A stretch of 11,055 bases of DNA from the NCBI GenBank assembly GCA_054661495.1, contig BAAFSQ010000313.1, positions 1-11,055 on the forward strand, in the 5' to 3' direction. Source of the DNA: Zygophlyctis sp. KS116 (Eukaryota; Fungi; Chytridiomycota). Below, in pieces: positions 1,595 through 10,876 of this stretch. Both the position numbers and the translations under genes were made by a program. Positions within the stretch are counted from its first letter, which is position 1. Every line of letters starts with the position of its first letter. Below the pieces are notes generated by a model that had not been told where the DNA came from, searched no databases, and was given only the letters and a program-made list of their open reading frames with translations.

Positions 1595-1694
1595 TTTAAC
1601 ATGATCTAGTAATTATATTTTATTATCAATTATCTAATATAAATTCAACAAGAATAATGTCCGAATTACTGGATATGAGACACCCAAATTCCAA

Positions 1695-1731
1695 ACGCGA
1701 CACGAAAATCACGAAAACACGAAAACACGAA
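1695..1731 (+). promoter_or_regulatory. Tandem CACGAAA(A) array (SCB-like boxes) preceded by ACGCGA (MCB-like)
   Basis: ACGCGA at 1695-1700; CACGAAAA at 1701-1708, 1710-1717 and 1718-1725; CACGAA at 1726-1731, ending 6 nt before ATG 1738. CRCGAAA is the established fungal SBF-binding consensus. A regulatory function here is inferred. Confidence 0.5.
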
Positions 1732-1737
1732 TTTGAA

Positions 1738-4459
1738 ATGTCTTGTAAGTAATCAATACATTCTAATCAATAGCTCAACTTGCAAATTATACCCTTCCTT
1801 CAAATGCATTAAGTACATGGATCGGCTGGGCTAAATCTGCACGATCAACTTTTTATGTTGGAAATCTAACAAGTTTTGATAATGCGGCCATAATGTCTTA
1901 CTTTCAGGTAACAATTGCAAAGAATAATCGTCAAGCCTCTCACTATTTATTTGGGAGTGATTTTATTTTTGTTGATCCTCACGATATTCGGGGTAAGTTG
2001 GTTTCGGACTAATCAAAGGGAATTATGGAGTGCGCTTGTCATTGCTGTTGTAAAAAGTTCTTAAACAGAAAGCAATCATCAAGAAAACCTCCAACTTCTA
2101 TGAAAAAGATTGTGATCGCAGTCATTTTTGGAGTTATCTATTTGCTATGGCTGTAATATTCGTTTATTAATATTCTAGAACTGGTTCTTCCCTTCTATTT
2201 TCATCAAGCCCAATGGTTTCTAGATCATTTTCATTGATAAATTCTAGTACGATTAATACTATCAATAGTGGACAAGCGTACATTTAGTGTAATTCTAATG
2301 TTAAAGTGTCTTTAATGCGCTCATTCCCACAATCAATCATACTATTGTAACTATGCAAGGATATTTATCAGATGATATACTTGCTTTTGTAGGAGTTATA
2401 AATATTACACTGGTTGATGTTACAATCGTTAACAATTTAATTCCAATCGCCAATCAATTGAATACGACTCAGGATAACATTACTTCTATCTTGGCCCAAT
2501 CTAAGATTATTTCGGACAATCAAGTGATTTTTAATGATTTATTAGGTTCTGTGAACTCTGGTATTTCTTTTCAATTTATATACTTATAGGTTACAATAAT
2601 ATCACAGACTCAATTACTGATCTATCTACTACCAACCATAAAATCGGTGAAACTGTTTATTATTGGAACAAAGCCACTGCGATACCTCTTCCCGCTACAT
2701 TAGGAGCCAGCTTGAATAGTGTTCTTGGAACTACTTCCCCTAACTCGACTGATATTTTAACTTCACTGAATGGTATGGATCTAAGACCATTCTCAAATGA
2801 AATCAAAAATATTGCGTATAATGTGTCAACGAGAATTGCGGATACTATAACTAGCTCTGCCATCACAATTACAAGCGATATAACTTTACAGTTAAGCAGT
2901 GTGAATACTTCTATTGCAAATTCCACTAGCGAGTATATTGATATTGTCAATGTCGAAGCTAATAGTGCTAAGAGCAGCATTAATTCCTACTTAGGAATGG
3001 TTATAATGTATGATAATTATCGGTAATATACAATTTCAATTAAAAGAGAAGAAACATCGGGTTTATGCTGATTGCTGCAATTTATTTAATAATCATAATT
3101 GTGGAAATCATTGGGTTATCATTAAAAAAACCAAGACTAACTAAAGGCTGCAATCTTACATCCACATTATTCTATGTGATTCTATATCTCTTTGGTATTA
3201 TAGTTCTCATCGTTACAGTTCTGATTTCAAGGGGTAAACAGAGTTCAATTCAAATCATAGGGTGTAGCTGGGTATTTACTGATGTAGCATCAGGTCCTCT
3301 TGGAGCTGTGGGTCTTTCGTCAACAGTAAATACAGTGTGGGATTTCAGAGATAAATGCTTCCAAAATCAATCTGTAATCAGAGCAGCCTCGGATATGGGT
3401 GTATTTAATTCAAGTCAAGTTAATCTAACATCTCTTACAAACGAAAAACTGGATGTTGTTGATTTCTCAAGTATTAGTAATTGGAATTCATCGTAAGTAT
3501 ACAATATTTCTCAAAATTATAGTGATTCAATTACTCTTTCAGATAGTCCATCAAATAAGGTTAGTGGATTAACCAATGTGAATACAGCGAGATTCGATAC
3601 AGCTTCATTAGATGCTGCTATTAATACGAATATTCCAAATTTAGTTGCAGATTTGACTACGCTGAAAACAACTATTGATACAGCTTATAGTACCGCAAGC
3701 ATCTCGGATTTGAATTTTACTGGAGGCCCAGCAGCTTCTGAACAAAATATTGGACTACAAAGCTACAAAAGCCAATTGACTAGTATAAGCACTAATATGG
3801 CCGCCCTTATCAGTCTCCTCAATACTCAAATTGCAGGAAATGCAACTCTTCTTAAAACCCAGACTATCGCAGTGAAAGATGCCTCTATAGCTTCAATTGT
3901 ATATATATTCAATTTTAAATCATAGAATGGTGCAGGAACTTTTCAGGCCCTGTACGACAATGTTTCAAACTCTTATAACTCTATGCAAACTACAATACAA
4001 ACAGATGTATGATTAATCACGTAATAATTTTTAGATGGCAAACTATGTGCCAAATTTTAAATCTTTATTGATTTCGCAGGTCAGTAACTTACAAAATGAT
4101 GTTGATGTTGCTTTATCATGCTATAATCTTGCAAATGATTTGTATTCAGTTCAAGATGCATTTTGCGGATCAGGACTGTAACTTATAAATACGCCTGATT
4201 ATAGATCAACTCTTGACGCTGTATGGTTATCATGTATTTTCTTGGCGGTAGTTTCAACACTATCTATGCCGTTAATTGTGTGGGGATCAAATGTTCTTTA
4301 CCCACTGGGTTACAACCAAATTCATTCATCAGAGGTAAATTTTGGTAAATTGTTTAAATCAAGGATGACGAAGCCCCGACACCACGTAAGAAAGTATTCC
4401 AAAGAGGAGATCGCAGCCGTATCCAGAAATCTGGCGCAGTTGATGATGATGAGTTTTAA
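1738..4459 (+). CDS. Pentaspan (5-TM) membrane glycoprotein, Prominin/Tweety-superfamily-like, copy A, ~785 aa. Exons 1738-1744, 1774-1907, 1936-1992, 2019-2152, 2179-2277, 2307-2560, 2590-3022, 3052-3233, 3261-3492, 3523-3898, 3926-4006, 4035-4177, 4205-4334, 4364-4459
   Basis: 13 introns of 26-30 nt give 2358 nt in frame. Architecture in order: short N-terminus; TM1 (PLTIYLGVILFLLILTIFGG); Cys cluster (CACHCCCKK); TM2; ~250-aa loop rich in N-x-S/T; TM3-KKPRLTKGC-TM4; Cys; ~280-aa loop ending SCYNLANDLYSVQDAFCGSGLSTLDAVW; TM5; short charged tail. The last intron (4335-4363) is the least certain; without it the frame stops at 4475. Confidence 0.8.
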
Positions 4460-4587
4460 TTATTTGTCCGAATAAAATGTATGGTGTTGATTGTGAATAA
4501 AATTTATGGTTCTTATTTTAGTTTCACTTAATAAGTGAAACTAAAATTTCCGGACATCCGATTAGAAATAGCGTTCGGACATACAAA

Positions 4588-7500
4588 ATGTTATATTTAA
4601 ACTATACAAAAATCAATAATGGATTAGAAATATGGATAGATTTTGCAGCAAATGCTAGATCCTATCTTGTTACGGGAGCAATTCCAACCAACTTGACAAA
4701 TATATCGCAGATTTTGGATTACTGCAAGGTACCACCAGTATATAAAATAATAATTAAGCCTTTACTAATATATATTGGATTTATGCTCATTTTAATGATC
4801 GTTACTATATTTGGAGGGCTATTTCAATGTTTCGGACAATGCTGCTGCAAGGGGAAAATACTTAAAAAGCAAGTTGAAATGAATCGTCATAGTAAAAGAA
4901 CTAAATTGGTGGTTGGATTGATCTTTGGAATAATATTTTTGCTATGGCTGTAAATAAGAAATCATTAATCACATAGTGTCGCATCTGCAATCTTATTTAA
5001 AGTAAGTCCGATGATGACTAGTACATTTCAAAATATGAATTCAAGTATAAGCTCAACATTAAATCATGGAAGGCTGTAAGTTTTATTGATTTCTAAATTC
5101 CATAAGATTAATTAATAACTTCCTTCCCACTGTTAATGATACCATTACAGATTTAGAAAACGACTTTGAAACAGATATCAAAGATTTTATCAGCATCATC
5201 AATGTTACAATGATCAATATCACCATCGTTAATAACTTGCTACCGCTTGCTTTCCTATTAAATCAGACACAGGATAATATCACAAGTCTCTTATCTAAAT
5301 CTTCAAACGCCATGTCAATTAAAAATACTCTAAGTTCTAGCTTTGATAATTTAAATATTAGTATCTCCAGCTCATATTAAATAATAGGCTACAACAATAT
5401 CAACAATTCAATTGCTGATCTGTATAGCGGTTATCATGAAATCGGCAACAGCGGTGTGTCTTGGAACAGCAAAATACCTATAGATCTTCCTTTGAATTTA
5501 GCTAGTAATTTGGAGTCTGTAATTTTAACAACACAACCCGATTCTGAAAATATTTTGGATTCAATCAAATCATTGGACTTGTCGTCATTCTCGTACGAAG
5601 TATTGAAAACTGCTAAGAATGTTCCAATGAATATATCAGCAACCGTTTCGAAATCTACTGATTCAATTATTGGGGATATTAGAATCAAGCTTGAAAATGT
5701 CAAAGAATCCATAAATAATTCCAGCAGTGTATCAATCCATGCTGCAGATAAATTACTTGATGATGCTCTTCTTAAATCAACAATTATATTTAAAGATGTG
5801 CTTTATTATGATGGTTTTAGGTATTTTTAATATTTTTAAATGATAGAAATATCTGTATTATGACTATAAGTGGAATAATTCTACTGATTATTTTCATTGA
5901 AACTACTGGATTGACGCTTAAGAATCCAAGACTTATAAAAGGCTGTAATCTAACTTCAGTGCTATTTTTCGTTTTAATTTATATTTTTGGTATTGTGGTA
6001 CTTTTGTCATCGATAGTATTATCTGCCGGTAAGCAAATTCTAAATTAATCCAAGGATGCAATAATATATTTGTTGACAGGAGTTCAGGACCAGTTTTTTC
6101 TCTTGGCTTGAAACCACAATTGGATACTGCTTTTAATTTAAGAGACCAGTGTCTTCTGAACAATTCTGTTATTTCCGCTGTATCAAACATTGGCCTATTG
6201 GAAGCTAATAATACAAATATAACTATTCAAACTCAGCAGAAATTAGATCTAGTGGATTTCAGTGTAGTTAGTAACTGGAACTCAACGTAAGAAGCGATTA
6301 AAAAATTAAATGTAGTGATTCAATTAGTCTATCAGATAGTCCAACAAACAAAGTAAATGGCTTGGTCAACGTAAACACATCAAAGCTTGACACTACATCA
6401 TTGAATGATGCTTTAAAAACGCATATTCCAAATTTGATAACAGATTTGATCACTTTAAAAACAACTATTGATCAAGATTATACTAGTGCAAATGTTTTGA
6501 ATTTGTCATTCACAGGAAATGCTACAGATTTTGATAAAAATATTGGATTACAAAACTACAAAACACAATTGATAAATATAAGTAATACGATAGCGGCACT
6601 GATAAGTCTACTTAATACCGATATTAAAGGAAATACGGCTATTCTTATAAATCGGATTGAAATTATGAAGAATAACTCTATTGAATCTATAGTAAATATT
6701 CGTTTGAACTAAATCATAGAATATGGCAGGGAATTTTCAAGGAATGTACGATAATATATCATCTTCTTTTAATGCATTACAAGTAAAACTACAAAATGAT
6801 GTAAGTTGATCTAAAATTAATGTAAAGATGAAAAATTATGTACCTAAATTTAAAAAGCAAGTTATCGATCATGCTTCTCTACTTCAAAAAAATATGGAAA
6901 GTGATTTGTCCTGCTATAGCCTAGCTTATAATATTTTCAATATTGAAGATTCGGTATGTGGAGCCGGGCTGTAAGTATTTTAAGCCTGATAAAATAGATC
7001 ATCTTTAGATGGTGTTTGGTTCACTTCTTTGTTTGTTGCAGTATTGTTTACAATAACAATGCCATTTATTATTTGGGGAGCAAACATTCTATTTTATTCC
7101 TACTACACCGAAATTTGGGAAAGGAAATATGATTCCAAGGATCAATTATCAGATGAAATCAAAATAATTAAGCAAGGTGAAGATAGAGAAAGAAAAACAA
7201 ATGTCTTAAAATCCGAGCTTTACACAGAAGAAGATGTATACTCTGAAACAAAACGGCGAACTATATTCGCTGATAAGATTAATGAATTTTCTGTCAATCA
7301 AATCGCAACTCCAAAAAGGAGCAGCTACAGTTTCTTAGCGAATGCAGGATATACGTCTGCTAGATCATCATCATCAAGTGAAAGTCGTCATATCAACAAC
7401 ATTTCGCCCACGAATCAACCGTTCACAAATGAAGATCTCTTTCAGATTCTCGAAGGTGGCTCAATTGAACAAGTGCAAGACAATATTTTTCAAGATCAAA

Positions 7501-7943
7501 ATCAATTTTCAGTAGGATCAATGTCACAAAAAAACAATCAAACTCTTCAATTCGATGCATCATATAAGAATAATATGTATGAATACTTGGATAATAGTCA
7601 TATGCTATCTGGAATGGAAAATCAAAAAGTTGGATTTGAACATTCATTGGATTCAGCAGCAGACGTATTTTTATCATTGGATCATGCTCGGACGAATCAA
7701 GAAAATTTTGAATCGAGTCATTCTAATGAAATCGCATTTATCCAAACAAAAAAGAAAAACAGTCTTGAAGAATTTGGCGAGACTGCCCCCATGCTAGCAG
7801 ATCTTCATGAACAAGAGGCGAAAACTCGAGAAAATACCATTCAAAACTTGGATCTAGATTACTTGGATCGGACAGTATCTCAGATTCCAAATATTCTTCC
7901 ATCAATTTCAAATTTGGATGCAACTCATAACAGCAAGGAATAA
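4588..7943 (+). CDS. Pentaspan (5-TM) membrane glycoprotein, Prominin/Tweety-superfamily-like, copy B, ~1025 aa with a long low-complexity cytoplasmic tail. Exons 4588-4728, 4759-4949, 4977-5075, 5107-5360, 5388-5820, 5847-6028, 6055-6286, 6316-6691, 6720-6800, 6828-6970, 6998-7943
   Basis: 10 introns of 26-31 nt, all at the same positions as in copy A, give 3078 nt in frame. Clear paralogy: CFGQCCCKGK, KNPRLIKGCNLTS, KLDLVDFSVVSNWNSTDSISLSDSP, SCYSLAYNIFNIEDSVCGAGLSSLDGVW. Confidence 0.82.
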
Positions 7944-7994: not shown

Positions 7995-8929
7995 TTAGAC
8001 ATCATTACTATAAAACTCCAAGTTACATAAAGGACATTTAGCATTTCCTTTTGTAAGCCATAAATCTAAAAATTCAGTAATTAAACCATACCTATACATT
8101 CTTTATGAAACAAATGATCGCAAAACAATTTCCTGAGTAGATTCCCATCACTAAAATCATCTAAACAAATTGAACAAGACACCGGTCCTTGAATAGAGTC
8201 GTCTGATTTAAGAGAATATAGAGATAAAATTGAATGTTTTTCAGCCAAAGATCTAGTTTCTACCATATTTTCTATTTTGGATTTCTTTGAGTCTGATTTA
8301 GAATCAAAAACTGCAATAGGAAACATTAGATCAATTTCCGACATTTGCATTGTATGATTTTGTACTACATTAACAACTTGTGAATTGATTTCAAATTCAT
8401 CATCAAAATCGTCTCCAAATGGGTAATCACTACTTAGCCTTTGATGATATTCAAAAGTGTAATAATTGATCAAAATACAAATAATGAAGATGGCAATTAT
8501 AGTCAAAGTTACGACTGTATATGCCAAATTCCACCAATTCACAGGAGAATAATCGTCATCTAAACCAGTCAAGTCTCTATAATCTATAACCATTGCACTG
8601 GTAGAATTTAACCCTAAACACGTTCTAGCGATGAACCGAGAGTAATTGCCATCAATCTGGAATATTGCTTGATCGGTCAGACCTAGATCAGTTTGAGTTG
8701 ATAAAAGATATTTTGATGGGATCGATGCTAGTTTTGTTGCATTTCTGCATGAATCGGGAACAAGCACCAAAAGCTCCAATGATGCAAGTCTGTTTAGATA
8801 AGTTTCAAATGTATTCAGCTTGAGTAAGCATTTTTGCAAAACTGTGAGGATCAGTCCATTTTTATCAAATGGAGAGGTAAAAAGCGATTCTTCTGATATG
8901 ATCTCATAGTTGAATCTGATTCCAGGCAT
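7995..8929 (-). CDS. Transmembrane RING-H2 E3 ubiquitin ligase (TM + C-terminal C3H2C3 RING), ~302 aa. Exons 8929-8092, 8065-7995
   Basis: A 26-nt intron (8091-8066, GTATGG...TTTTAG) completes the RING: CSICLDDFSDGNLLRKLFCDHLFHKECI|DLWLTKGNAKCPLC. One TM helix (LAYTVVTLTIIAIFIICILI) lies upstream. The N-terminus may be incomplete, as there is no obvious signal peptide. Confidence 0.85.
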
Positions 8930-9146
8930 TGATTATTCTAAAATTTGAAGGCCGCCGGACAAAATTTGTCATGTCACTCATGGAAAAACGAATGTTTCTC
9001 TTGGAAAATACATGTTAAGCATCTACATTTATTGGCAAAGAATGTGCTGACTGTTTTTTATTAATCATGCCTTAATCTTAATTGTCCTTAGCAAACAAAT
9101 TCATACTTTCTCGAGAGTGGGTAGTTTAGGTCCGCAGTTAAGTATC

Positions 9147-10681
9147 TTAATCACTCTCTTCAGAGATCTCCTGGGCATCTTGAGAACTATCTTGACCATT
9201 CTGCTGACCAATCTCTTGGCTAATGTCGTGGGGTATATCCCCATTAGTTTGATTAAAAGAATTAATGCCAGAATTAACACTAGAATTGCTTTCAACTCTT
9301 TCAGATACTGTATTTCCTTCATCTGTTGAAAATATTGATTCATCATATAATCCAGTGGATTTCAATTCTCTTTCTAAAGCACGTCTAGATCGTGATTCTC
9401 GTTGTTTCTTCATTTGTAATTCTTTCTTTTCCTCTATTGTAAGAACAGGGGATTTAATTCGTCTTCTTTGACTACGTCTTCCTTGGGAAAAATCTTGTAA
9501 AAAGTCTAGAGACTGAATTTCAAGTTTTTCTAATTCTCTGGATTTTATCCGAAATGATTTTTTAGCATTTGCTACTCTTTCTTCATAATCCCGCCTTTTA
9601 TCACATTCTTTTTCGTATTCCTATTTATTAAACTAGAGAAAATGAACAAAAATTATAATTATGGAATAAAGAAAATAATACCTCTAAATATGGAATAACA
9701 TCTTCTAAAACACCCGATAAGTATGAGTGTAATTTCTTGTCATTTCTATTTCTACTCCCACTTAAAGATTCTTTAAATTCAGTCCATTCTGTACTTTTAT
9801 CAGCCACTAAAATCCATTTTTCAGCATCGTTTTTAAAAGTTTCTGATTTTTCTGGTAATGACTGTTTATAAAGACGATGATCTATCCAATTTTCATAATT
9901 TTTTAATTACCGTGAAAATGCCAGTAAGCAAAAGACTCTGTTGAATCATAACCTATTGGCCCCATTCTCTAATATAAGTAAAAAACCAATTACCCAAATC
10001 CAAGCCGCATCACTTTCATTAGTATAAATAAGTTGATTAAATGTATCCGGATTGTCAAATTGCCATTCACATAGACAATAAATTATAAGAATCTTTGATA
10101 AGTTTTTCAATCAATTACCTTGTGTCTTAAGGAAATATCTTTATAATTCAATTCTGGAGACCAGTCCATATTCGACCCAATTTCATCCAGGCTTGAAACA
10201 TAAGGCTCCATTCCAATATAAGAACGATACTCAATCCACTCTTGTTCTATTTTTTTCCTTTTTTCAAACTGTCCGGGCAAGACTTCTAACCAATTTTTCA
10301 AGTTTACTGTTTTTGATTTATATAGTGTCTTTAATAGTTTTACATGAATCATCATCAATTCTTGGTCGTCTGTCATGATTGTCCGATCACAACTTTTTAT
10401 CAGTTGCTCTTCAAAATCCTAAAATAAATCGTTTCAGAGACTACCCGTGTATTAAAAGATTCTAGACTAAAACCATCTTGAAATAGCACAAGAAACTGGC
10501 AGGCCGCTATAAACTCCCAACAGCCTCGAATCTCTTTCCTCTGCTCCGAAACAATTGCTTCTTTATCAGACTCTAAATTTGACCGGACATCATTTCCATT
10601 CAGAATACTTGTTGGCAATGATTCTGCAGAAGAATTGAGAGCTGCATCATCCTCATTTCCGTCCAGAGCAGTTGATTCCAT
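9147..10681 (-). CDS. DDT/WHIM-motif chromatin protein (ISWI-remodeller accessory subunit type, RSF1/CECR2-like N-terminal architecture), ~455 aa. Exons 10681-10445, 10418-10119, 10092-9994, 9968-9911, 9881-9682, 9620-9147
   Basis: Five introns (26, 26, 25, 29, 61 nt) give 1368 nt in frame. Motifs: WEFIAACQFLVLF (DDT-like), HKILIIYCLCEWQFD (WHIM1-like), RMGPIGYDS...YWHFHDHRLYKQ and WILVADKSTEWTEFKESL (WHIM2/3-like). These are followed by an Arg/Lys/Glu-rich coiled-coil and an acidic Ser/Gln tail. The family assignment is from motif recall. Confidence 0.72.
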
Positions 10682-10876
10682 TTAAACAGATGCAAGACTC
10701 TCCTAAACCTCAATTGGAGTTTTAAGTTTCTTATAATGCTTCAGACAATCATTAAACATCCATCAAACAGACCCATATCTTTGGCACTGGATTTACTTTT
10801 GATGTATTTTTAGATCTTGAACAGTAAAGATCGATTTCGGACCAATGTCTTGAAGCGCGTCAGGTTCGTGTCAAAA

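Follow-up and report, generated by a model that had tools for sequence, protein, structure and literature searches.

Animal Prominin-1 (CD133) and Prominin-2 (PF05478) are pentaspan membrane proteins, in which the transmembrane segments (TM) are arranged as 2+2+1, with two glycosylatable extracellular loops of about 250-280 aa, a cysteine cluster after TM1 and a tryptophan in TM5. The loops are about 250 residues outside and about 30 residues inside the cell according to one report (PMC3108902), and the outer ones about 280 according to the results section of another (PMC11405016). The Tweety homologues TTYH1-3 (PF04906) carry a CCC cluster and four loop cysteines. TTYH proteins expose the N-terminus outside, have no signal peptide and form a short helix before TM1 (PMC8361169), and their loops are only about 120 aa (PMC11405016). 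According to the same paper, extracellular vesicles are induced by both PROM1 and TTYH1, and putative prominins of fungi, excavates, SAR and plants have already been published (Bell 2024, PMC11405016). The protein BASA50_007223 of Batrachochytrium salamandrivorans is named 'Prominin' in UniRef.

In the window, the whole stretch of 11,055 nucleotides analysed here (contig BAAFSQ010000313.1 of the freshwater chytrid Zygophlyctis sp. KS116), two genes of this kind, A and B, are aligned in tandem (Table 1). Removal of 13 introns from gene A and 10 from gene B yields open frames of 785 and 1025 aa, respectively, and the two products are 44% identical across about 780 residues. All 23 introns are 26-31 nt long, with GTA at the 5' end and TAG or AAG at the 3' end. 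Codon and phase are identical for all 10 introns of gene B and 10 of the 13 introns of gene A. On a diverged orthologue contig (L004; 68% amino acid identity in the TM3-TM4 exon region), four of these positions are occupied by introns, whose sequences differ and whose lengths are 26/28/27/31 nt versus 29/29/27/30 nt in the window. Nine intron positions are common to the NCBI-annotated chytrid homologues (47/0, 110/2, 228/1, 372/2, 433/1, 510/2, 636/0, 663/0 and 710/2). The splice models are thus supported by three independent lines: the A/B coincidence, the introns of L004 and those of annotated homologues. The spliced models were used for translation, hydropathy, comparison with fetched sequences and trees; single exons, natural ORFs or fetched proteins served as queries for database searches and folds. 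A metagenome contig (L005), 99.3% identical to the window, has T in place of G in the donor site of gene A intron 9 (position 3493) near the contig end, possibly an assembly error or a splice-breaking allele.

Table 1. Predicted genes, exons and conserved elements of the tandem pair (window positions)
Feature	Positions	Strand	Description
Gene A	1738..4459	+	predicted prominin-family pentaspan protein, 785 aa; short cytosolic tail, ~45 aa
Gene A, exons 1-7 of 14	1738-1744, 1774-1907, 1936-1992, 2019-2152, 2179-2277, 2307-2560, 2590-3022	+	
Gene A, exons 8-14 of 14	3052-3233, 3261-3492, 3523-3898, 3926-4006, 4035-4177, 4205-4334, 4364-4459	+	
Gene A, CCC	2043..2051	+	C75-C77, TM1/IC1 border
Gene A, TM3-IC2-TM4 block	3052..3492	+	TM3-IC2 (KP..TKGCN)-TM4-C435...C466; most conserved block, search seed
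Gene A, C692-x14-C707 and W718	4119..4226	+	W718 at 4224-4226, TM5 start; interrupted by intron 4178-4204
A-B spacer	4460..4587	.	128 nt; AATAAA motifs; too small and without a frame for a gene B signal-peptide exon
Gene B	4588..7943	+	predicted prominin-family paralogue, 1025 aa; acidic long cytosolic tail, ~285 aa
Gene B, exons 1-6 of 11	4588-4728, 4759-4949, 4977-5075, 5107-5360, 5388-5820, 5847-6028	+	
Gene B, exons 7-11 of 11	6055-6286, 6316-6691, 6720-6800, 6828-6970, 6998-7943	+	
Gene B, CCC	4840..4848	+	C75-C77
Gene B, C692-x14-C707 and W718	6912..7019	+	W718 at 7017-7019; interrupted by intron 6971-6997

Hydropathy gives five strong hydrophobic segments (residues ~49-71, 97-119, 375-396, 411-433 and 717-740), and hydropathy, positive-inside charges and the homologue model described below agree on a 2+2+1 five-TM pattern with the N-terminus outside and the C-terminus inside. 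A possible sixth TM at ~166-192 was rejected: this weaker stretch contains an Asp and a sequon, gives no peak in the homologues and falls, in the model, within an extended helix of the ectodomain. The extracellular loops are 255 and 283 aa long, and the intracellular loops IC1 (25 aa) and IC2 (14 aa) are basic, containing 8 and 3-4 K/R, respectively. The '>300 aa' loop size in the methods of PMC11405016 exceeds these lengths, but it conflicts with the value of about 280 in the results of the same paper. CCC at 75-77, C435, C466, C692-x14-C707 and W718 exist in both A and B. The cysteine cluster at the TM1/IC1 border includes C71 together with C75-77 in both proteins, and additionally C73 in A. 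W718, at the start of TM5, is conserved in 94% of the homologues; judging from its position, it may correspond to PROM1 W795. Each large loop contains 7-11 sequons. The loops are rich in Asn, Ser and Thr, and this number does not significantly exceed that in shuffled versions of them (p 0.06-0.5).

These data agree with most of what the first-pass annotation had proposed for protein architecture. Two five-TM genes would indeed emerge after removal of the tiny introns, judging from the open frames and intron positions; the CCC after TM1, the Cys after TM4 and the C-x14-C...W before TM5 are found in both products; the two loops of about 250-280 aa are prominin-sized; and an N-terminus of about 48 aa is devoid of a signal peptide in both. 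As to heavy N-glycosylatability, the sequons are there, but in the number that composition gives, and the N-terminal motif YFQPL is present in A but reads YCKPL in B.

The 48-aa N-termini of A and B contain sequons but no hydrophobic signal peptide, and no clear one was detected in 10 homologue records. A hidden signal-peptide exon was ruled out for A, B and the inspected homologues. An in-frame ATG upstream of gene A (window 1657-1737) could add 27 hydrophilic residues, which include no signal peptide. Among chytrids the N-terminus is conserved, and its residues Y, W, R and Y hardly vary. This region matches Prominin (8e-6) better than Tweety (E 0.3), and the N-terminal piece alone gave no match to TTYH by profile or by fold. 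A helix before TM1 is predicted at residues 13-29 of B and 19-32 of a Gorgonomyces homologue (P0027), and the whole-model alignment of the latter begins at model residue 9 and TTYH1 residue 6. The chytrid N-terminus resembles that of TTYH at most in design, being short, without signal peptide and with a predicted helix before TM1. The missing signal peptide was not taken to disqualify these proteins as prominins, since Xenopus prominin-3 is likewise without a predicted one (PMC3108902) and since PMC11405016 does not include it in its prominin criteria.

The exon-by-exon Pfam scan gave a sole match, to Prominin, with E=3 in one exon at the expected TM1-TM2 profile position. A profile search with the TM3-TM4 block yielded 47 proteins; animal prominins were not reached, and the lack of non-flagellated fungi among the matches is hence uninformative on distribution. 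The named matches are all of chytrids, namely Gorgonomyces, Entophlyctis helioformis, Polyrhizophydium, Boothiomyces, Kappamyces, Terramyces, Quaeritorhiza and Borealophlyctis, and both Batrachochytrium species also carry homologues. Full-length homologues align with A from end to end (~750 aa, 23-28% identity). Five of them score well above the 34.3 bits that Pfam requires for Prominin: P0027 (74.9), P0045 (71.9), P0010 (59.2), P0019 (55.7) and P0018 (54). Prominin is matched at E<=0.1 by 21 of 28 homologues (best 5e-21), and Tweety by 1 of 28 (E 0.02). In the reverse direction, the homologue profile recovered both window genes from the genome in separate exon matches, the best with E 5e-61, and gave no third prominin copy in the assembly. 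No Tweety gene above the Pfam cut-off was detected in the genome, and the weak Prominin or Tweety matches elsewhere were rejected as coiled-coil proteins. By word search, one exon led to two close fragments and the 28-row alignment only to its seed; sequence searches of the PDB returned coiled-coil and viral TM-Cys noise but no TTYH; and the language-model search ranked Prominin-1-A first (0.95).

For structural comparison, P0027, which has 26% identity to A, stands in for A and B through its AF2 model (pLDDT 80, pTM 0.49). The best Atlas match of this model is prominin-2 (TM 0.52 over 531 residues). In the PDB, TTYH1-3 occupy the top eight Foldseek matches (E 1e-4 to 5e-3), and in VIA the top two are TTYH (Z 18.4 and 16.5, next 11.1), with a very high rmsd of ~46, as the elongated bundle of helices was aligned flexibly.

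Taken together, A and B very probably belong to the prominin family, with a probability of roughly 0.93; this assignment from sequence comparison is transitive, through the homologues of 23-28% identity. Membership in the Prominin/Tweety superfamily, as claimed at first, is supported by the homologue profiles and by the structure matches of the homologue, prominin-2 being best in the Atlas and TTYH1-3 best among solved structures. Two other claims found no support. A Tweety/Prominin hybrid does not agree with the homologue scores and the Prominin-favouring N-terminus, so that A and B are best called signal-peptide-less prominins; and a newly found non-animal branch is at variance with the earlier report of fungal prominins and the UniRef name.

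The nearest relatives are chytrid PF05478 proteins of Gorgonomyces (KAI8906310.1/KAI8906311.1), Polyrhizophydium (KAL2915489.1), Entophlyctis helioformis (KAI8929059.1/KAI8929060.1), Boothiomyces (KAJ3319633.1) and B. salamandrivorans (BASA50_007223). A and B are like them in full-length homology, topology, cysteines, the TM5 Trp, absence of a signal peptide and the nine intron positions, and also in the frequent occurrence of a tandem short-tail/long-tail pair. Unlike these relatives, A and B group in a clade of their own, have other neighbours and do not carry the Asp that is otherwise conserved in the G-D-x-C motif behind TM4. The likeness to animal prominins covers the 2+2+1 topology, the two large loops, the Cys cluster after TM1, a Trp at a probably equivalent place in TM5 and the fold of the homologue model; in contrast to them, the chytrid proteins have a shorter N-terminus and no cleavable signal peptide, the Pfam matches starting at profile position 83-93, and B has its long tail. 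With TTYH1-3 they share the fold family, the N-out orientation without signal peptide, the CCC cluster and the four loop cysteines, but the loops of the window proteins are more than twice as long, the TM5 Trp is absent in TTYH, and the Tweety cut-off of Pfam is not reached even by the best homologue.

By analogy with the animal proteins, we can also predict the mode of action. TM1 would act as a reverse signal-anchor, placing the 48-aa N-terminus outside without a cleaved signal peptide, and the high positive charge of IC1 agrees with the positive-inside rule for such insertion. The two large loops would wind around each other to form an elongated ectodomain of helices, in which disulfides C435-C707 and C466-C692 are likely on the model of the TTYH flap. 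Palmitoylation of the CCC cluster is likewise probable, as judged from PROM1 (PMC10967083). If they behave like PROM1 and TTYH1, the proteins would most likely oligomerise where the plasma membrane is curved and rich in sterol, and may there help thin protrusions to form or persist and vesicles to bud, at the flagellum, at rhizoid tips or in zoospore cleavage or encystment vesicles. The genome encodes IFT57 and many chitin synthases, and the host is thus a flagellated fungus. By this analogy, a membrane-shaping role of the pair is somewhat favoured, and the same or slightly better odds may be given to the whole scheme from insertion through ectodomain, palmitoylation and curved-membrane oligomers to protrusions or vesicles. 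In Quaeritorhiza, the last exon of the homologue P0031 (KAJ3091106.1; L037 8747-12386) encodes polyproline and a WH2 actin-binding motif (Pfam E 2e-9), which hints at a link to actin if the gene model is right. This tail is either real or a gene-model fusion, and the annotated start omits N-terminal TM1 exons that were found upstream.

The same architecture is open to a different reading, lipid or sterol transfer of the TTYH2 type, in which the ectodomain cavity would move lipids, for instance host- or substrate-derived ones, between an extracellular or endosomal carrier and the membrane. TTYH2 speeds lipid transfer from APOE particles (PMC12328215), and TTYH has a hydrophobic cavity below a disulfide-held flap (PMC8361169); in A and B and their homologues four loop cysteines are conserved, and TTYH proteins are also the top solved-structure matches of the homologue model. 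The sequence, the size and the TM5 Trp are nevertheless all prominin-like. In addition, no lipoprotein carrier is known in chytrids, which counts against such a function. Lipid transfer is the main rival to membrane shaping, with a chance of about one in five by our estimate.

Tandem prominin pairs exist in Gorgonomyces (823+951 aa), E. helioformis (773+752), Polyrhizophydium (831+967), B. dendrobatidis (813+952) and Kappamyces (725+1113), and the pairs of these five genera mostly adjoin ATR and/or ACC. In the cultured chytrids, the short-tail gene (up) usually comes first and the long-tail gene (down) second; in E. helioformis the downstream model is also short. The up and down members of a pair are 24-29% identical. 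Single genes are found at the Boothiomyces locus (down class) and at the Quaeritorhiza locus. Directly upstream of the E. helioformis pair lies a third, very divergent prominin of 979 aa (L016 6429-9919), which carries no Pfam annotation. The N-termini of the downstream class (L015, L016, L017, L018 and L021) contain a short hydrophobic-(K/R)R motif (FKRD, FRRA, AKRA, IRRS and TKRD), which resembles a Kex2 site, yet no signal peptide precedes it.

The recurrence of such pairs raises the question of whether A with B, and up with down, form obligate heterodimers of short-tail and long-tail subunits, selection then explaining the tandem order. The short-then-long pairs of five genera and the window, the retention of up and down at such low identity, the dimeric nature of TTYHs (PMC8361169) and the environmental orthologues for A and for B all point in this direction. 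Against it, Boothiomyces has no more than a down-class gene at its locus, Quaeritorhiza likewise has one gene there, and the tails are not detectably homologous (B versus Gorgonomyces, E 0.06-0.09). A 3'-truncated tandem duplication would be the simplest cause of tail loss in the upstream copy; the short-first recurrence is weak evidence for heterodimers because a duplication ending inside the tail gives the same order without selection. Obligate heterodimers are regarded as improbable.

In the tree, the up class (99/99), the down class (97/96) and A+B with their environmental orthologues (100/99) are separated, with A and B each having its own environmental orthologue. The A+B clade is placed outside up+down with moderate support (91/87), its position having been unresolved in a smaller earlier tree. 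B as a down-class orthologue was rejected by the AU test (p-AU 9e-145). Based on these sequence data, A/B probably arose by a tandem duplication within its own lineage, whereas Batrachochytrium, Polyrhizophydium, E. helioformis, Gorgonomyces and Kappamyces retain an older up/down pair, which makes two independent duplications the most likely course. Alternatively, gene conversion may have homogenised an original up/down pair into A/B, with no second duplication, as the common order and tail pattern and the weak match of the B tail to the Gorgonomyces down tail might indicate. This alternative is improbable, given the tree position of A+B with environmental relatives and the different neighbours, a RING gene in the window but ATR and/or ACC at the cultured-chytrid pairs. 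A search for ACC as a synteny test gave no match and was uninformative.

The RING gene encodes a membrane-anchored RING-H2 E3 ligase (window 8081-8929, minus strand) tail-to-tail with B, and a RING gene comes after the B-type orthologue on ENA contig ERZ27248021 as well. Upstream of A lies an intron-broken membrane-protein-like gene (window ~500-1540, plus), and beyond the RING gene one or more genes (window ~9100-10750, minus), both regions giving no exon-wise Pfam match. Just upstream of gene A, window 1694-1724 contains three copies of CACGAAA (SCB-like cell-cycle boxes), the only CRCGAAA matches of the window, together with ACGCGA; this cluster is possibly involved in G1/S regulation or is a core promoter element. 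The motif YCGGACA, a possible promoter element, occurs at window 657, 4550, 4575, 8955, 10583 and 11006, several of these in short intergenic stretches and two just before gene B.

A calcium- or swelling-activated chloride channel, as formerly proposed for TTYH and Prom1, is very improbable, because the TTYH structures are poreless and conduction was not found (PMC8361169), notwithstanding a report of Prom1-dependent chloride efflux (PMC6828804). A much bolder proposal is that a two-subunit prominin system, a tandem co-regulated short-plus-long heterodimer shaping flagellar or rhizoid membranes, evolved twice independently in chytrids, and that the signal-peptide-less form retains the architecture ancestral to both animal prominins, by gain of a signal peptide, and Tweety, by shortening of the loops; we regard this combination as speculative and unlikely.

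The accessible literature, most subscription journals being outside the search, gave no paper on chytrid prominins, the missing signal peptide or tandem pairs. The signal-peptide-less chytrid prominins and the probably repeated short-tail/long-tail tandem duplication thus seem to be new. The molecular function of prominins is still debated, and unicellular flagellated fungi may provide a simple system for asking whether the ancestral activity was to bend membranes, to shed vesicles or to transfer lipids.
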